From Ruditapes philippinarum (taxonomy: Eukaryota): DNA of 64,000 bases. Position 1 is the first letter of the stretch. Each line of letters begins with the position of its first letter. The translations under genes and the position numbers were made by a program. Location of the stretch: assembly GCF_026571515.1 (NCBI RefSeq), contig NW_026859463.1, positions 1 to 64,000 of the forward strand. The letters are read 5' to 3'. Below the pieces are notes generated by a model. It made no database searches. It was not told where the DNA came from and saw nothing but the letters and a program-made list of their open reading frames with translations. Shown in pieces: positions 2,640 to 11,817 of the stretch.

Positions 2640-4307
2640 ACTTAGAGAAAAAATATTACAGAATGAACATGAACAGGACTTTCTTGAAAGAAGATGAATG
2701 AACATGAACAATTATGTAGACGTTAAATAAAGAAAACTATTAAAAATGCTATTGGCATGAGACTCCACGACATTGTGATTATCAGTCCTGCCCTCTACCT
2801 ATTGAGCTATTCAGGAAACAGATACTTAACACTTTTGAAATTAGGTCTAAATACATTACAATTATTATTATAAATGATATCCTCAACATACTTCAGGTAT
2901 TTTTCTTTGTTATAACTTACATCACGCATGCGTAACAGTGTTAATAACTCTAGCATCTTTTTTCAAAGAGATATTTTCTCTTTGAAATCCGAAACTTCAA
3001 ATACTTTTTGCTCTTATAATTTTTAAATGATGGGATTGTGTTCAGATTTTATTTTTTGATCTTTTCCATGAAAGCATCGAAAAGTCTGTTTATCTTTTAA
3101 TGACATGGTCATTATGAAGAACAAATATATTTGAGTGTTTTCTTACACCCGCTACGTCATTCCATCTTTCAATCTATGCATCCTTCCTTCATTATCAGTG
3201 TCTGCTTATTATCCTGGTAACAGTTGCACACAGTCAATTCAAATTTGACATTTGGTTATATCATACAAAAATGCATATCAACTTCAAATTTGACCATGGT
3301 TCGATGCAATTGGCAGAATAAGGCCCCTTTTACTTTGAGAAAAATAAGAAATTTTCTGTTTCAGTCCATTATCTCCCCAATAGTTCGTCTTGCTTTATTG
3401 TGTCAAGTATTTACATTCCTTTCACTTTCAGCTCTAATGTTTACCAATTTGAATAATAAGCATCAATTATGCTTTGAATCCATTTTTATTATTTTTAAAC
3501 ATTATTTTGCCCCTTCTCAAGAAGAAAAATAGTATTAATAACGGAGGCATGATATGCTTTTAATATGAAAGTATTTTTCACCATTATTTTTATTTTGAGT
3601 TGTGATTAAAATATCACAAACAATATCAACAACGAAAGGCGGTGATAAATGAACGCAACCCATACACGACCCAGCAAAAAGAACCAGCGGCAAGGAGCCC
3701 AGGCGGACCCCAAACAAAAACAGGACATGGCCCAATACAGCACGGACAGGTCATTCACTAAAATGATAAATAATTTGTAACTGATAAGGAATTAAAAAAA
3801 ACAAATGATTGCACAACAGGACCACAGAGTCAAAGGGCACATGAGATAGTGGGATGGGGGGGGAGTTAATCAAAGAAATAAAAACTAGGGGCAAAGGGGA
3901 AGATACTTACCGTAGACAAGACAACAACAAGAGACACACGCAAGAGTGTCACCAAAACAGTATGAACCAACATAGACATACATCTGAGGAACACAGAGGG
4001 CGCAGCCTTGGAACGGTCAGGAGCAAACTAATGACTGCCGGGGAGTTTAAACCGGTTAATGGTGCACCAAACCTCGCTCTTAGCCCAATAATGTTTCTAT
4101 AAGCGAGACAGTGTTAATAAAATGAATCCCCGCCAAGCGAAATTCTAACAGATGTTATGGTTACAAAAGGTTAAATAAGTAAAACACCACAATGATCATG
4201 TACAAACATATAAAAGTAAACCCAATGACCATAACAAAAGTACTCAATGTCCTTAAGGAAGACAGAGCAACAAGAAAATCACCTACAAGGGCCCGACGAA
4301 GCAAGGC

Positions 4308-4373
4308 AGAAGACGAACATTAAGACAATTCAGACCCAAAGGGCTTAAAGAACTGTCCATCATAGAGTCTCCC
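4308..4373 (-). ncRNA. SECIS-like element (type II shape) at the end of the Naiad ORF
   Basis: Minus strand reads GGGAGAC-TCT-ATGAT-GGACAGTTC-TTT-AA-GCCC-TTT-GGGT-CT-GAATTGTCT-TAAT-GTTC-GTCTTCT. This gives a 7-bp helix I, AUGA, a 9-bp helix II, unpaired AA and an apical mini-helix. The 3' quartet strand is TAAT rather than canonical NGAN. Confidence 0.7.
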
Positions 4374-6135
4374 ACTTGGTCCGTCAGATGTAATCAACAG
4401 AGGAAAGCGTAGTGTTAAACTGTCAAAGGGTTGAACACGAAGCATGTATTATGTTTTAAAATAGTAGGGTCATAACCTCTTTTAATAAAACGCTTAATGA
4501 TTTTAGTAAAAACAGCAGAAAGATTACCATGACCCAAAATCTTACGAAGTTTGTAAATCACATCGCCATAAAACCAGACTGGCAAATCCCTTGTTGCAGA
4601 CGAGTTTTTAAATCATTATTGAATTTTGAAATTAGATCAAAATTACGATTTAAAATTTAGTAAAATATTTCCTTAATTTATGATAACCCTTTTTTAGAAG
4701 CCTGCTGGTAATAAAAATATTCCGCTCGTTGAAATCCTTTACGTTGATACAAGCTCTAGCGAATCTAATTAACTGAGTAACATATACCCCGTAATATGTT
4801 GCATGGGGTAGGTTTCCATCTAAATTTGGATAATTAACTATACAAAAGTCAAAGTCATCTCGTTTGTCATAGATTTTTGTGTGAATAGAATTGTTGTTGA
4901 TAGTTATATTAAGATCCAAAAATGGTGTACTATAATTTCAAGAGTTCGTTTTATTAAGTTTTAGTTTATGCGGATAAATGTCAGACACCATTAGGTCAAA
5001 ATAAGAATTATCTAAATTAAGAATATCTGGAAGTATTATTAAATGCGACTATAACATCTTGTTGTTTATCTTCAGACAGACTCACAAAGTCTCTTTCATA
5101 GCAGTACAAAAACAAATCGGCGACCTGGGATGCACAATTAGTACCCATAGGAATTCCTATGATCTGTTTGAATAGGGTATTATCAAACCTGACATAAATG
5201 TTGTCTAGAAGAAAAGAGAGTGCTCTACAAACTTCGTCACAGGTCCACATAGTATAATGTTTAACAATACCGTTAGCAATAAAAAGCTTTGTTACAATAA
5301 CATGCTAGAAATGCAACCATTTCCGTGCAAAAGTTTTCTGAATTAAAAAAAACTAGTTTATCATTGATTAATTTATGTGGCAAAGTTGTATAAAGTGTAG
5401 AAAAATCGTATGTACTGACAGTTGAACTTTGAAAGTTCTTAATTTTGAATTTATCCAAGATTTCAACAGCATTTTTAATAAACCAAAAAAGATGTTCGTC
5501 TGTGTTTTCATAGACTTTATCACAACATCTAATTGCATGTGTTTTTATGGCAGTCAAACAAGACGTCAATAAAAAATAGAAAGTTTACTTGTAGTGCAAG
5601 ATGTAGGATTAGCAATTAATCTGGCTTTGAAAGGTTGTTTATGTAATATAGAATCCAATACATCATAGGTAGATAGTGTTCCTTTTAATTAATTTGGACT
5701 TTAAGCCGGTGCTAGGGGCGTGGTCGATAGTTTGCACTTGAGTGTACCGTCCATGAACAGACTCAATCAAACCGAGCCTGCAACATTTTCAATTTTGCCG
5801 TGTTGGCCTTTCTTTGGGGATTTTTATTTCTCTCTATTTAAGATTTGAAATATTAGTAATATGATTGTTTTCAATGACTTTTTCGGAGGCAGAGGTTTTA
5901 GAGTACGCATTAGTACTATTTAGTTTCTTATGCAAAACGATAACGTAATGGATTTGTCATACAATTATTATAATATTATTAGCTGCCTTACCCGCTGGCA
6001 CCAAAACACATTTTGAATGAAAAGCTAGAATATCCCTTTTCAGATGTCTTAAAGTAAGTCTTGGTTTAGATGGCAAAAGATGTTCATTTCCACAATAAAA
6101 ATTAATACGTGAATCAATAATCTTAAAGATGTTAC
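4345..6135 (-). pseudogene. Naiad reverse transcriptase region (frameshifted; in-frame TGA at Cys position 5957-5959)
   Basis: Built from ORF-track fragments 4650-4919, 5017-5250 and 5273-5569 plus manual translation: ...KCVLVPAGKAANNIIIIV*QIHY...; C-terminus ...GYDPTILKHNTCFVFNP...GDSMMDSS. Confidence 0.85.
5706..5836. repeat. 131-bp fragment of a local repeat family inserted in the Naiad RT
   Basis: Flanked by TTTAAG direct repeats (5700-5705, 5837-5842). Removing it restores ...SNLKVQIN.... It is the reverse complement of the repeat at about 45885-46017. Confidence 0.8.
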
Positions 6136-6171
6136 GTATGATAAAAGAAATTCAATTGATATGATTACAGT

Positions 6172-9100
6172 CTATATAAACTCTTCTGAAAATTGCCCTC
6201 CATGAAATACTTCCAGCAGATTGTAACCAGAAGCTCCTCGTTTAGTCATGCAGACTGCAAGGTGATATTTACCCGGACACCATCGTACATCCTTTACTTC
6301 ATTCCTGGACAAAGATTCATTGATGGCGGCTATGTCAACCCGCAGGCGCTTGTCATCAACTAACTTGGTGGAATGTATAGCATCAATGACACTTTTGTTG
6401 GACTGTCACTTTGCATTTGGAATTCTTCTTCAAAGCCTCTTACAACAAGACGGGCTTTTGTCTGTTCATGTTTTGTTGTTATGACCCACCTTGTTGATAA
6501 TGTATTTTGGCCACAATCTTTGACTTCTACGTATGTACCGAATTCTTTCAATTTCTGTAATTCTGCAAGTTTTGCCTCTGAGACATTATTGTTAACTTTA
6601 CAGTTCTCCAACACTAGGTTCACATTGTCATTCAACAGTTCCAGTCAACTTGATCCAGATTGACACTCTTCTTCTCTTTACTGATGTCTTCCATAACATT
6701 ATTCCAGTGTTTGTTCTTCCCTGTTGCCTTTCCAAGAACTTTTGCATGTATCCAAACATCAGTGTTTTGTGTTTTATACTGAATATTATCATTGGGTTTC
6801 AGGAACTTTCTATCTTGTGTCTGTCTATCTCTGTCAGACCCGACAATTGGTATCTCTCTTCTAGCCTTGTTTGTAAATTATTATCAGAACTTCTTGCAGG
6901 TAGTTCTTCAGAAATCCATTGTTGATCATCTGTGTTTGTCAATTCTTGCTGAACCTTGGCCCCTCCGTCTGCAACTGAACTTTGATCATGGTATTCTCTA
7001 TCCGACAAATTGTTAACTTTTTGTAGTCTATTTGGAGATACACGCACAAAAACTCTTTCGTGTCGCACAAACACTATTTTCCCATCTTGGACAACTACCT
7101 TTCCTGGTCCAAGCCAGCATTCTCGACCCTCTCTTTTGTAACAAAACACGGTCTCCATGTTCAAACACTTGTTCTAAAGCTCTTACCTTATTTCTGAGTG
7201 CTCTTCTTACTCTTTCATCAGCTTCAGACTGTATAAAAGTCCTTCGAGTTGCATGCAAAACATTTAAGTGCTTTGTAAAAGCTTAACTGCTAGTTGTTCC
7301 TTGTAAAGCTGGCAAGTTTTCGCTCATGATGTTTGGAATGTTGGGGTTCTGGCCAAAGACAAGTTGATGGCTGCTGTTTGCAAATAATTCCTCTCCATAT
7401 TTGCCCATGATAAAAGTGTCTGCAAATTTACCTTTTCATAATCTGCATGGAGCTTGGTCAGCATCATATCGTTAATTGTATGCACTCTTTCACACAATCC
7501 ATTTTGAAATGGACTGTCAGCTGCAATTGTACATAGCTGAATGTTTACAATGGAAGTAATTTCCCTTACCTCATCCGAATTGAACTCCCCTCCGTTGTCT
7601 GTCATCAAAGATCCCATCACGTCCAAATCGCCCAACCCATTCTTTCATTAAAGCATCTAAGATATTGCATGGCTTCTTTCTGTCTACCAAAGCGGACAAA
7701 GTGTATCTTGACCACATGTCTATGATGTGTAATAATCCAGCGCCCATTCCATTGTTTTTAGGTCCATTTGCAAACTTTTCGTTGAACCTGGAGGCCATTG
7801 GCATACCTATCACTGGCCTTGAAGGAGTCTTGGCATAAAGTTTACAAAGTTCACATATGCTTACAATCTGGTCAAGATCTGCTTCATACTCGGCTTTCCA
7901 TATTCAAGCGTCCTTTAAAAGTGATGCCAATCTTTTCTTTGGAGGATGAGCAAATTGTCGGTGCAGTTTCACAAGAGGTTTGCGTCTCTCTTGTGTTTTC
8001 AAATTCTCAAGGACAATTGCATACACCTTTTCCACTGGAACTTTCACTGTTTTATCTATTGGAATGCAGTAATGGCCTGATGTTGTTAAGTTTAGTGCTA
8101 CCTCTGTCCACATAATGGTCGCTGTATCATTCTCAAGATCCATCTTTATTGCTGCTTTCTTCATTGCAGTACGAGAGGGTAGTAGAGTAATATCTGACTC
8201 TACAACATCAGTGGTTATGGCCACTGCCTTTCCAGCAACTACAGCAGGTATGCAAAACTCACCTTTTGATTTCAGGCATGTTCACCCTCCAAATTTAAAC
8301 ACTCTCTGACCTTCTGATTGTAACACTTTCTCTATGTCTGTATTGTCCAAAGATTCTAAGTAATTGTCCATCCAACTTCTTCCACATACTGTACTACTGC
8401 TACAAGCACTGTAGAGGACCGCACAGTTTCGAGCATCAATCCCTAGTCGTCTGATCTCATCTGTATCATACCCAGCAAAATGAACAGCGTGGTCTTCAAC
8501 TGCATTGACTCTCTTCTCTTCATATCTTCCCAGCTATCCGGGCATACAGGCAACAAATGACAAAAAGACCCACATGATTTGCATGTCAGTGGTCTACCAT
8601 CTGGTCCTGTGGGATTAATGTTCTGTGTCGATCCCTTCTTTCGATTTTCAGTGGCAAACTCCCCTCTAAGATTCTCTCTGAGTTTTCCCCACTTCCAACC
8701 CCCCCTGTTTTACCACTGTAATTACCATGATAGCCGCTCCGTTTTGTTTACCCCGCTGCGAGCAGGACCTTTTAGTTTGCCGCCAAAAAGCTGGTTCTAG
8801 CTTGATACTTGTCTGGATACTTGATAATTCTGTATCATTGCCCTTAAATTTCTTCAGTGACTTCTTGGCTTCCTCGTTAAGTGTCATGTTATTATCATAG
8901 TTCATGCCTGTAAGGACTAACAATTGCTCTTCATTTGAAATATTAGCCTTCCGTATCTCACTAAGCAATGTCATTTTCTTCTTCTCTATCTTTCTATATT
9001 TGGAATCAAACATAGCCACATATTCAGTTATTGATTGTCCTTCTAACCTTTTGAAATCTTCAAAATCCTCAACTTTTTCCAGGCTATTATCAGTAAGATC

Positions 9101-9344
9101 ATCCTTAGCAAGAAGCGAATAAGAACATTCAAACCACCATAGCCCTTCAACTCGTCCAATGAAAGTTGATCAAATACTTTTTCTCGAATTTGTGATTCGT
9201 CATTTTCAGGAAGTGTCAATGCGACAGCATTACCTTTTTTTCTTTGCTTAAGTCAGTAATTTCTTGCCATGCCAAAAGTTCCTGCTTAAATCTCTCATAG
9301 TTTTTCCCTTTTCCTAAAACGGGAGGATTAATCCTGGTTGTCAT
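6172..9344 (-). pseudogene. Copia gag-pol, fragmented
   Basis: ATG at 9344 (MTTRINPP...) to TAG at 6172-6174, with many frameshifts. ORF-track fragments: 8666-9019, 7904-8224, 7571-7813, 7324-7635, 6799-7164, 6360-6635. Confidence 0.8.
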
Positions 9345-9426
9345 GCTGAATTCCAGGCTTGGAAGCAAAATTATTTGTTAAAACACTGTAAAACAATGAT
9401 TTCCACCGAGAATATCTCGATACGCA

Positions 9427-9436
9427 TCTGCTTCCA
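9427..9436 (-). promoter_or_regulatory. Primer-binding site, tRNA-iMet-like
   Basis: TGGAAGCAGA lies 2 nt after the LTR end, one mismatch from TGGTAGCAGA. Confidence 0.6.
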
Positions 9437-9438
9437 CT

Positions 9439-9644
9439 TGTTAACACCCACACCAGATATAATACGCCAACACCACTGCATAGTTTACACTTTATTATGA
9501 CTGCACAATAATCATTAAACAGATCATAATACTCTTGACGTCGCTAAGCAAGAACTCACCATGTCATGACGTCACAAAGACGTCACTTAAAGTTGTTTGT
9601 AAAAGAAGAGTATTCAACAAGAGATGTAAAACATGAAATTAACA
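9439..9644 (-). repeat. Copia 5' LTR (206 bp)
   Basis: Has TGTTAA...TTAACA terminal inverted ends and an internal AATAAA. It abuts the Naiad linker on one side and the PBS on the other. Confidence 0.8.
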
Positions 9645-9985
9645 CAATTATATCAAAATTACCAGTGATTATATGGCCAAACTCTGAATTACAGAATTTA
9701 GAAGTATTGCAGTCTCAGGTTGTTGGAGTATTAGACTGAATATCTATGTCAGAAACCACTTTGTTGTAATTTAATGTAATATTTCTAACAGGTTTCTTAT
9801 ATTTATGGCAAATAATTGGTATCTCGGAGTTTTTGAAGTATAAAGGAACTGAATTAGTGACACGTTTAATACGAAAAATACTTGGTTAATCGATGAAATC
9901 GATACCTTTAATAAGAAAGGTTACTTTTAGAAAATGCCTGTCGTGGTCAGAAGTGTTGTCGATATGAGGTTTTAAAATATGATAA
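9645..9985 (-). pseudogene. Naiad linker domain with CxC motif (TGA at first Cys, 9715-9717)
   Basis: Manual translation: HFLKVTFLIKGIDFID*PSIF..VPLYFKNSEIPIICHKYKKPVRNITLNYNKVVSDIDIQSNTPTT*DCNTSKFCNSEFGHIITGNFDII. Confidence 0.8.
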
Positions 9986-11489
9986 ACAACATCATCAAGG
10001 AAAGGCGGCGTTCAATGAACGCAACCCCCACCCGACCCAGTAACAAGAGTCAGTGGCAAGGAGCACAGGAGGACCCCAAACAAAAACAGGACAGGGCACA
10101 CATGAGAACATGGGCAGGCGAACCACTGAAATCATAAATAATAAGTGACTGATAAGACGTGCTGAGTATAACTTTGAATAAGATAAGCTGCTGTATATAA
10201 AGGATCTGTTTGAATAACCATATTATCTGCGTCCGCGTTTAAGATTTTCAGAGATGATAATGAAAGGGAAGTAAGATGTGATAACATTGCGTGTTTACCA
10301 GAGCGTTTTTAAGATAATATTTAAGTCGTTGACAGACAGGGTAATTTTAGATTATTCGTTTGATGTTGCCATTTCTACGTACTCCGTGGGATCGGGAATT
10401 ACGTTTACGAGTACAATGTATTCAGAATAGAAAAATATCAATGTTTGGATCTTTAGAGATGTTACCTTGTTGAAAAATATTGTCATTTAGGCCACGTGGG
10501 AAAGGCGTTTTGTAAGTTCTTGATCCATTTTAATTCTGCTAAGTGTCTAAACTAGCAGAAGCATCAGAATCATAAATTATTTGTCCCACTGGGTTGAATT
10601 GTAACATTTTTTAAATGAATGGCGATCTTTACGAAAATGTTGATATAGAAAAGTTGTAAAGTTTGTGCGATTTTTCGTCATTTATAAAAATGTTTCACGG
10701 AATCGAATTTTTAAGAGAACGTTTTCCTGTCTAACCAACATACTGTATGCCACACCCAGGGGTTGTTTTCAAATTAAAACATAAACAAAATGAGCTGCCT
10801 TTCAGTTAATATATGTATTTAAAATAATATTAAGTTCTCCCATTTACATAAGAGGTTATTGTAGACCTGTGCGATAAAAAGTTACAACATATGCACCTCT
10901 TAGAATTACACTTATTTATAGACTATAGATACACTCTAGATTTATGAGGATAATTTGTATGAGTGATATCATATTTCCTTAGAATGGTATGTTTTATAGG
11001 AGAAATCCTAATGCGTAATGAATTATGGAAGATATTAGGAGTTTTCTAGATCCCCTGGAAAATAAAATGAATTTAAAAATATAAACCCGTTTAAAACGAA
11101 AAAAAATGACGGGGTTGGTGTTCAAACTTAGGTGTTCAAAAGATTTCTAAAACTTTTAACAAATGTTAGCCCTTTGAAGTACTGGGAAAAGGTGGAATAA
11201 AATGTGTATTGTTCCTTTTTTAAGTTATTCAAAAATCATGTTTTAGTTATTTAAAATTTTTTCCGTGTTAATTTGGGGACCAAGTTAAATAAAAGACTAA
11301 AATTTAGGCCACAGTGTACACAGAAAACCCCAACAAAAAGGGAAGATTAAGAAAAAAAGGGTAAAGAAAATATAAAAAAGAACATTAGTCTTTTGAAGGT
11401 TGGACTGAAAGGGGGCACCAACACCCGAACGCCCCAAAAATCCCTTGAGGGTGAAAAATTTAAAAATTGATTTGGGATTTTAACCCGGG

Positions 11490-11817
11490 GGACTTTTTAC
11501 AGCCGCCACACGGCACAAACAACACAGTTGTGAGCATAACATATGACAAACAAGATCAACAAGGAAAGGCGGCGCTCAATGAACGCAACCTACACACGAC
11601 CCAGCAACAAGAACCAGCGGCAAGGAGCCCATGCGGACCCCAAACAAAATTAGGACAGGGCACAAGACAGCACGGACAGGCCAATCACTAAAATGATAAA
11701 TAATTTGTTACTGATAAGGAATTCAAAGATAACAAACAAATGATTGAACGATAGGCCAACAAAGTCAAAGGGGACAGGGGAAGGGGATGGGGGGTTAGTC
11801 AAAGAAATAAAAACTAA
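11490..11817 (-). repeat. Additional copy of the Naiad 3'-terminal (pLTR-like) segment
   Basis: Closely matches 3610-3887 (GAACGCAACC..CACGACCCAGCAA..GAACCAGCGGCAAGGAGCCC..CAAAGAAATAAAAACTA). Confidence 0.8.

Follow-up and report, generated by a model that had tools for sequence, protein, structure and literature searches.

The stretch of DNA analysed here, hereafter the window, comprises 64,000 nucleotides from Ruditapes philippinarum (RefSeq assembly GCF_026571515.1, contig NW_026859463.1, positions 1 to 64,000, forward strand). On alignment to its relatives, the minus strand of positions 3612-11816 is a dead copy of a Penelope-like retrotransposon of the Naiad type, broken by three insertions. 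The copy was mapped against a full unit from another locus, to which the unit positions below refer. Its parts are listed in the 5' to 3' direction of the element.

11542..11816, minus strand: pseudo-LTR (long terminal repeat), formed by the 3' end of a partial tandem copy, also of this Naiad family, that lies upstream (unit 3988-4244, 78% identity)
10153..11535, minus strand: leader, CX2-5CxxC motif and GIY-YIG endonuclease region, decayed (unit 1-1365, 83% identity)
9976..10152, minus strand: 177-nt insert derived from the 3' terminus of a further copy of the family (9978-10098 match unit 4124-4244, 90% identity)
9645..9975, minus strand: linker region with the CxC motif (unit 1363-1693, 95.8% identity)
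6138..9644, minus strand: foreign insert of 3.5 kb, a copia-like retroelement fragment, in whose place 166 nt of the Naiad unit, among them the GxKF/Y motif, are missing
5837..6137, minus strand: DKA-motif region (unit 1860-2157, 92.7% identity)
5706..5836, minus strand: dispersed repeat of 131 nt inserted in the reverse transcriptase (RT) part, absent at that point in about 28 other copies
4397..5705, minus strand: RT part of the open reading frame (ORF), decayed (unit 2152 onward, 89.5% identity)
4306..4375, minus strand: hairpin of the selenocysteine insertion sequence (SECIS) type, by Rfam SECIS_1 match and fold
3612..4305, minus strand: 3' untranslated tail, an unbroken match to the unit end at position 4244

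A preliminary description of this locus, made from the letters of the window, had placed the element at 4308-9985 and had stated that it lacks the endonuclease. These limits lie inside the element but are too narrow, as the copy covers 3612-11535 plus the pseudo-LTR at 11542-11816; the former 5' limit of 9985 is the edge of an insertion, and a decayed GIY-YIG part is present at approximately 10153-11230, beyond the 177-nt insert. Remnants of C..RC.CC and YVG.TG are visible in translations of 10153-11535. The stretch 9976-10152 is missing at the corresponding point of other copies and resembles an extreme 5'-truncated Naiad insertion. At the large foreign insert, nothing in the window corresponds to unit 1694-1859 (with loss of the GxKF/Y stretch); along the insert, a gag-like portion that includes a CCHC knuckle, an integrase-like portion and the beginning of an RT of copia type can be made out, with weak Pfam matches (rve, E 0.088; RVT_2, E 0.035). 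The 131-nt repeat, which is SINE-like (short interspersed nuclear element), was also found in loci L002, L009, L010, L013, L021, L028 and L030, and in L002 it directly adjoins a Naiad 3' part.

The window copy is 7-17% diverged from young copies. Codon alignment to near-intact copies located private stops (TAA or TAG) at 11158, 10733, 9888, 5687 and 4417, together with indels and frameshifts. Within the span first described, the stops other than TGA had been said to be mostly TAA at sites that are not Cys, and this agrees with the TAA codons at 9888, 5687 and 4417, all of which are at non-Cys codons. One extra Ile codon, relative to intact copies, separates the DKA motif from the TGA that follows it. 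No (TA)n microsatellite was found at the ends of the window copy, where the (TA)n insertion bias characteristic of Naiads was looked for on this copy's ends.

The host genome (1.41 Gb in 15,874 contigs) was scanned, which gave more than 5000 first-look candidates, and nine full-length loci (L031-L039) were read. Statements on the family are based on natural copies, counts and pairwise comparisons. The unit measures approximately 4.25 kb in the nine loci, often with a partial tandem copy upstream; at several loci tandem units recur every 4.23-4.26 kb or so. Identity among younger copies is 98-99%. When TGA is read as selenocysteine (Sec, U), the nine loci contain long stretches in one frame of an ORF of about 1057 codons, which starts with MNNLNRNN. 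The order of motifs is C-NSKR-C-GC-C, the GIY-YIG region (FVY...YVGQTG..R..EH), a KR-rich stretch, U-D-C, GPKY, PADKAANN and the RT motifs. In near-intact copies the GIY-YIG (FVY...YVGQTG..R..EH...E...N) is N-terminal to the RT in a single frame, and in intact copies the RT motifs DFSTLYTT, GIPMGTNCA and RY.DD were seen. With regard to the fingers-domain insertion of RTs of the PLE/telomerase type, the spacing between DFSTLYTT and GIPMG was read as about 75 residues. Around the YVG motif, downstream of C-NSKR-C-GC-C, the residues U/C-x4-C...H...H are found, which we read as the CCHH finger in the text of Craig et al. The ORF ends in ...AFLF-TGA, and a TAA follows 15 codons downstream, inside the hairpin.

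Exact words from the 3' end of the unit are about 8-fold more numerous in the genome than words from the CxC region (1074 vs 138), as expected from 5' truncation. A first impression of an endonuclease-less family of about 2.9 kb was dropped, as the upstream flanks are homologous among copies. The Rfam scan of the nine full loci, with E up to 1, listed SECIS_1 and one unrelated weak match and no hammerhead ribozyme. As judged from its motifs and arrangement, the family bears the traits of Naiads, i.e. an N-terminal endonuclease, the CxC, GxKF/Y and DKA motifs, the CX2-5CxxC and CCHH motifs, and pseudo-LTRs, tandems and 5' truncation.

Six in-frame TGA codons of the window copy are common to the family. 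They are given below with their census in the copies of the host genome.

10802..10804, minus strand: S1, TGA at the Cys just before GIY; TGA in 12 of 13 copies
10769..10771, minus strand: S2, TGA at the Cys just after GIY, read as the first Cys of the CCHH finger; TGA in 13 of 13 copies
9715..9717, minus strand: S3, TGA at the first Cys of CxC; TGA in 21 of 21 copies
5957..5959, minus strand: S4, TGA in place of the DKA+8 Cys (eight residues past DKA); TGA in 28 of 28 copies
4938..4940, minus strand: S5, TGA at a non-Cys site between YxDD and FLDL; the two young subfamilies differ here, one having TGA and one TCA (Ser)
4394..4396, minus strand: S6, terminal TGA, 30 nt upstream of the SECIS AUGA core; TGA in 32 of 34 copies

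Two of these had been reported before, at 9717-9715 (TPTT*DC) and at 5959-5957 (NNIIIIV*QIHY), and had been assigned to the first Cys of CxC and to the Cys after DKA. Both are present in frame on the minus strand, and distant Naiads have C-x-C and the DKA+8 Cys at exactly these columns. The two sites are thus real, but the count was incomplete, with four fixed candidate Sec codons and a fifth polymorphic one in the family. That most copies would have TGC or TGT at the two codons, which the preliminary description had named as the outcome against a family trait, did not occur, as every copy in the census has TGA at S3 and S4. Genome-wide, the exact 24-mers across S3 numbered 138 with TGA and 0 with TGT or TGC, and those across S4 included 0 with TGY. 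As an independent check, a six-frame search of the genome was performed with a Cys-type relative of different host origin; in 19 of the 23 best full-span copies the only stops were '2 TGA' or '3 TGA', and no Cys-type family of this clade was among the best matches.

Site S5 divides the young copies. The first tally gave 16 copies with TGA and 17 with TCA, and the subfamily alignment 14 with TGA (including the window copy) vs 17 with TCA. The two subfamilies differ by 14 linked fixed differences in 1.45 kb, which track the state of S5; identity is 98.9-99.2% within subfamilies and 98.1% between them. In relatives the residue at S5 is mostly Ser, otherwise Thr or Asn, and never Cys or TGA. The subfamily with UGA at this non-Cys site has amplified as well as its sister, which is hard to explain unless the UGA is read through. 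At S6 the UGA is probably a true terminator, because it lies only 30 nt from the AUGA core, because relative L041 has TAG there, and because Craig et al. argue likewise for a UGA in such a position.

For comparison with other Naiads, 80 related loci from a metagenome scan (40-79% identity) were used as relatives. Where they could be read, sites S1-S4 were only TGA or TGT/TGC, as follows.

S1: TGA in 17 relatives, Cys in 17
S2: TGA in 19 relatives, Cys in 15
S3: TGA in 20 relatives, Cys in 36 (C-x-C in 36 at the same column)
S4: TGA in 34 relatives, Cys in 30

All four sites are Cys in distant Naiads, and the nearer clade mixes Cys and TGA lineage by lineage. Two intermediate relatives, L068 and L073, have TGA at CxC and Cys at DKA+8 and keep the SECIS match, so that a Sec at CxC would not be tied to one at DKA+8.

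Selection on the protein was assessed behind the UGAs. Against the relatives, dN/dS was 0.09-0.16 in the RT part, downstream of the four UGAs, as well as in the endonuclease-linker part, and the aligned parts of the relatives used contained no TAA or TAG. Among the 14 fixed RT-part differences between the two subfamilies, 13 affect the third codon position, with 11 synonymous and 3 non-synonymous changes (P ~1e-5; expected synonymous share by chance ~22%).

Protein predictions from assemblies in the European Nucleotide Archive (ENA) were also inspected. Proteins P0043, P0110, P0138 and others have Trp at the CxC and DKA+8 sites, which fits a gene caller reading TGA as Trp, and other predictions, e.g. 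P0001 and P0053, have Cys at S4. Some ENA protein clusters have up to 4545 members and lie on contigs of Mb size; Sec-type Naiads seem to be very abundant in other genomes. P0080 and P0111 are Naiad RT pieces deposited as proteins of 'Candidatus Thiodiazotropha' metagenome-assembled genomes, and are probably host-clam DNA binned with the symbiont.

The hairpin at the end of the ORF, of which the preliminary description had noted the SECIS-like shape, was located at 4306-4375 on the minus strand. Its Rfam SECIS_1 match (4310-4371, minus strand; 29.9 bits, E 0.0083) was the sole meaningful RNA match in window 3500-10500, and each of the young copies has SECIS_1 at the same place with 33.0 bits. 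The 70-nt fold of 4306-4375 consists of a helix I of 9 bp, an internal loop of 8+8 nt with AUGA (4363-4360), a helix II of 10 bp and an apical loop with AAA. Its fold z-score against shuffles is -4.3, and the range among the folded hairpins is -3.5 to -4.3. Thus the fold exists, and it is conserved with covariation across relatives: in a 16-sequence alignment with a hand-defined structure, 89% of the cells were paired, vs 35-50% when the 3' partners were slid by 1-3 columns, and compensatory change was found in 14 of 19 pairs. A model built from this alignment retrieved eight more hairpins, and in the resulting 28-sequence alignment all 19 pairs showed compensatory change.

The hairpin also tracks the TGAs. 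Rfam SECIS_1 matches at the same place were obtained in 12 of 20 relatives with TGA at at least one of the four sites or from the same near clade, with 38.8 bits in relative L040, which is above the Rfam gathering score of 35; in 15 relatives with Cys at every readable site there were 0 such matches. Among loci with the 3' end covered, the model matched 23 of the 29 that carry TGA and none of the 22 with Cys throughout; in this count the loci are not phylogenetically independent and the model derives from the TGA-bearing clade itself. One relative (L041:1687-1755 and L066:941-1009) has a SECIS whose 5' core is UUGA; the base before UGA is normally A or G. The host genome contains two tRNA-Sec genes (78.8 bits each vs a cut-off of 47).

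From this evidence we consider it very probable that the window copy belongs to a Naiad family with one ORF, coding for endonuclease, CxC linker and RT, that needs four or five UGAs read as selenocysteine, because the TGAs are fixed, Cys and TGA alternate in relatives, purifying selection acts behind the UGAs, the SECIS covaries and tracks TGA, the host has tRNA-Sec genes, and the phenomenon has been published for Naiads of clams and spiders. The earlier proposal of an ancestor encoding a Sec-containing RT is likewise supported by the copy census and by the conservation of the SECIS. Active members, as seen from the copies read, are elements of about 4.25 kb with an ORF interrupted only by UGA, at four fixed Cys positions and, in one subfamily, at a fifth position that is otherwise Ser. 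The single SECIS hairpin, which starts 18 nt after the last sense codon, would recruit the Sec machinery, and host tRNA-Sec, SBP2 and eEFSec would decode the UGAs as selenocysteine. The sixth UGA would be too close to the SECIS core for recoding and would end the protein. The product would then nick DNA and reverse transcribe its own RNA, giving rise to tandem pseudo-LTR copies and 5'-truncated copies, and transposition would thereby be tied to selenium supply and Sec-decoding capacity.

Several observations weigh against this reading. The 3' core of the SECIS is UAAU in this family, vs NGAN in all 27 relatives, and to our knowledge all accepted SECIS elements read GA at this position. When compared with the canonical core, the hairpin has the AUGA and the apical AAA, the stems and the covariation, and lacks the 3' GA, so that the shape claimed in the preliminary description was right but the core is non-canonical. 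The family's SECIS_1 scores stay under the gathering score, and with Rfam at gathering thresholds no match was obtained in the nine loci, the SECIS coming up only under E-value thresholds. Decoding four or five UGAs with one SECIS would be demanding. None of the nine full-length copies read was free of a frameshift or an extra stop, no search having been made for a clean one. Pfam scans of four ORF pieces and of the relatives gave no family, and a PDB sequence-profile search gave no meaningful match. The RT and endonuclease assignments are based on motifs, on the description by Craig et al. and on a weak match to the telomerase RT fold; for the latter, an RT-piece model from a 10-row alignment was of low confidence (pLDDT 59), and its best Foldseek matches were telomerase RTs with weak scores (E 1.7e-3 and worse), which we count as a hint only.

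The departure from the GA core speaks for another explanation, namely that the family had a selenoprotein ancestor, that the G-to-A change in the core killed recoding and that the copies are relics. UAAU was found in 26 of 26 copies read, including the old window copy, and genome-wide exact words numbered 1074 with UAAU vs 3 with UGAU; added to the NGAN core of the relatives and the low Rfam score, a scan of the whole unit of our own found no canonical SECIS with 3' GA elsewhere, and the idea of a second, canonical SECIS in the unit was dropped. The timing of the change is against such a loss. As it is shared by both subfamilies and by the older window copy, it predates both subfamilies, and afterwards the RT ORF gained the differences given above, mostly synonymous and at third positions, and both subfamilies amplified to copies 98.9-99.2% alike. 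From this pattern of fixed differences we infer that ribosomes still pass the UGAs with the help of the UAAU hairpin. SBP2 binds SECIS elements through an L7Ae-type domain. The kink-turn (k-turn) Kt-23 of Thelohania solenopsae has an adenine at position 2n and still folds as a k-turn and binds an L7Ae-family protein (PMC3985660), so that adenine at this position is compatible with folding and L7Ae binding. By our own mapping of the letters, a UAAU core would give the same A.A pair at 2b.2n, which SBP2 may tolerate; Kt-23 is, however, an element of ribosomal RNA and not a SECIS. Loss of recoding in relics is therefore regarded as unlikely.

It is also conceivable that the UGAs are passed by other means, such as near-cognate readthrough, or are not passed at all and the copies were moved in trans. 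Decoding is predicted here from sequence and the biology of Penelope-like elements is poorly known, which leaves some room for this explanation; yet at four sites the only alternative to UGA is a Cys codon, the UGAs come together with a covarying SECIS that all-Cys relatives lack, and codon-phase-specific conservation behind the UGAs argues that the lineage's own ORF is translated. A Cys-type family of the clade was, as stated, not among the best six-frame matches in the genome. We hold this to be very improbable. The remaining idea, that the two TGAs first noted are mutations of one dead copy and the hairpin a product of chance, takes its appeal from the heavy decay of the window copy, which differs by 7-17% from young copies and has TAA/TAG stops and frameshifts. 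It is refuted by the copy census, since the TGAs and the hairpin are common to all copies and to many relatives, and is given practically no weight.

Returning to the Sec-decoding family, on balance we lean slightly towards a stronger statement: that its AA-core SECIS, with A.A at 2b.2n, is functional and supports processive decoding of four to five UGAs in a recently active retrotransposon, with one Sec at a Ser position and one at the first Cys of a CDGSH-like CxC, within a large marine Naiad clade in which each of the four positions has changed back and forth between Cys and Sec many times.

Multi-Sec Naiads of clams and spiders were, as the preliminary description correctly stated, reported by Craig et al. 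in 2021; their Naiads, from two clams and from two spiders, carry three or four UGAs, and each family has its own SECIS (PMC8557442). In clam Naiads the UGAs are at the Cys before GIY, at the first Cys of CCHH and at DKA+8, the last being the Sec site reported in all published Sec Naiads (PMC8557442). Sites S1, S2 and S4 of the window family are the sites in Naiad_Mmer (Mercenaria mercenaria), in which the SECIS overlaps the first non-UGA stop and a UGA just upstream was argued to be the stop owing to its closeness (PMC8557442). Locus L040 fits the description of Naiad_Mmer, with a UGA 7 nt before the hairpin and TGC at S3; Naiad_Mmer is the closest named relative of the window family (78% amino-acid identity in the RT part). 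L040 probably encodes P0002, whose 90% cluster includes M. mercenaria XP_053391481.1. In the window family, unlike the Naiad_Mmer type, the first CxC cysteine is coded TGA and not TGC, which brings the Sec codons to four or five vs three; the core is AUGA/UAAU vs GUGA/UGAU, and the terminal UGA lies five codons earlier. At 78% protein identity it is classed here as a separate family, in a different host.

Naiad_Scon of Sinonovacula constricta has four UGAs, one of them at a weakly constrained residue of RT6(D) (PMC8557442). S5 resembles this UGA, the two having been compared by description only. Unlike in the window family, in Naiad_Scon the SECIS follows a UAA/UAG stop by 1-21 bp and no Sec at CxC is reported (PMC8557442). 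The spider Naiads (Naiad_Smim and Naiad_Sdum) are likewise multi-Sec elements with their own SECIS, and were judged to be of independent origin (PMC8557442); they have an extra Sec in the CX2-5CxxC finger, which is all Cys in the window family (C-NSKR-C-GC-C). Several UGAs per ORF are decoded processively in selenoprotein P, with very many in that of bivalves (PMC8557442), but this is a host gene, whereas the window family is a retrotransposon in which one SECIS was found. In the library searched, no paper on Sec-coding transposons was later than Craig et al. 2021. The two-SECIS arrangement of vertebrates is a further point of comparison: in these animals selenoprotein P carries two SECIS elements.

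The kind of element described here is thus already published, Sec-coding transposons being known from one paper and four families. What is new, on the sequence evidence given, is the family itself, the Sec site at CxC, the Sec/Ser polymorphism between subfamilies, the non-canonical SECIS core and the breadth of Cys/Sec toggling in marine relatives. A young and abundant Sec-type family, represented by over 1000 3' ends in 1.4 Gb of genome, would be added, and with it two new kinds of Sec site, one in the CxC motif and one at a non-Cys residue that separates two subfamilies. The toggling at four sites would offer a natural series on Sec versus Cys in zinc- or iron-binding motifs, and the rule that a SECIS cannot do without its GA is put in question by a core fixed as AA in a family whose ORF shows signs of having stayed under selection. 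Gene callers cut such ORFs at the UGAs or read UGA as Trp. The thousands of scattered 3' fragments with a SECIS may, following a suggestion of Craig et al. (PMC8557442), be a source from which new host selenoproteins arise.

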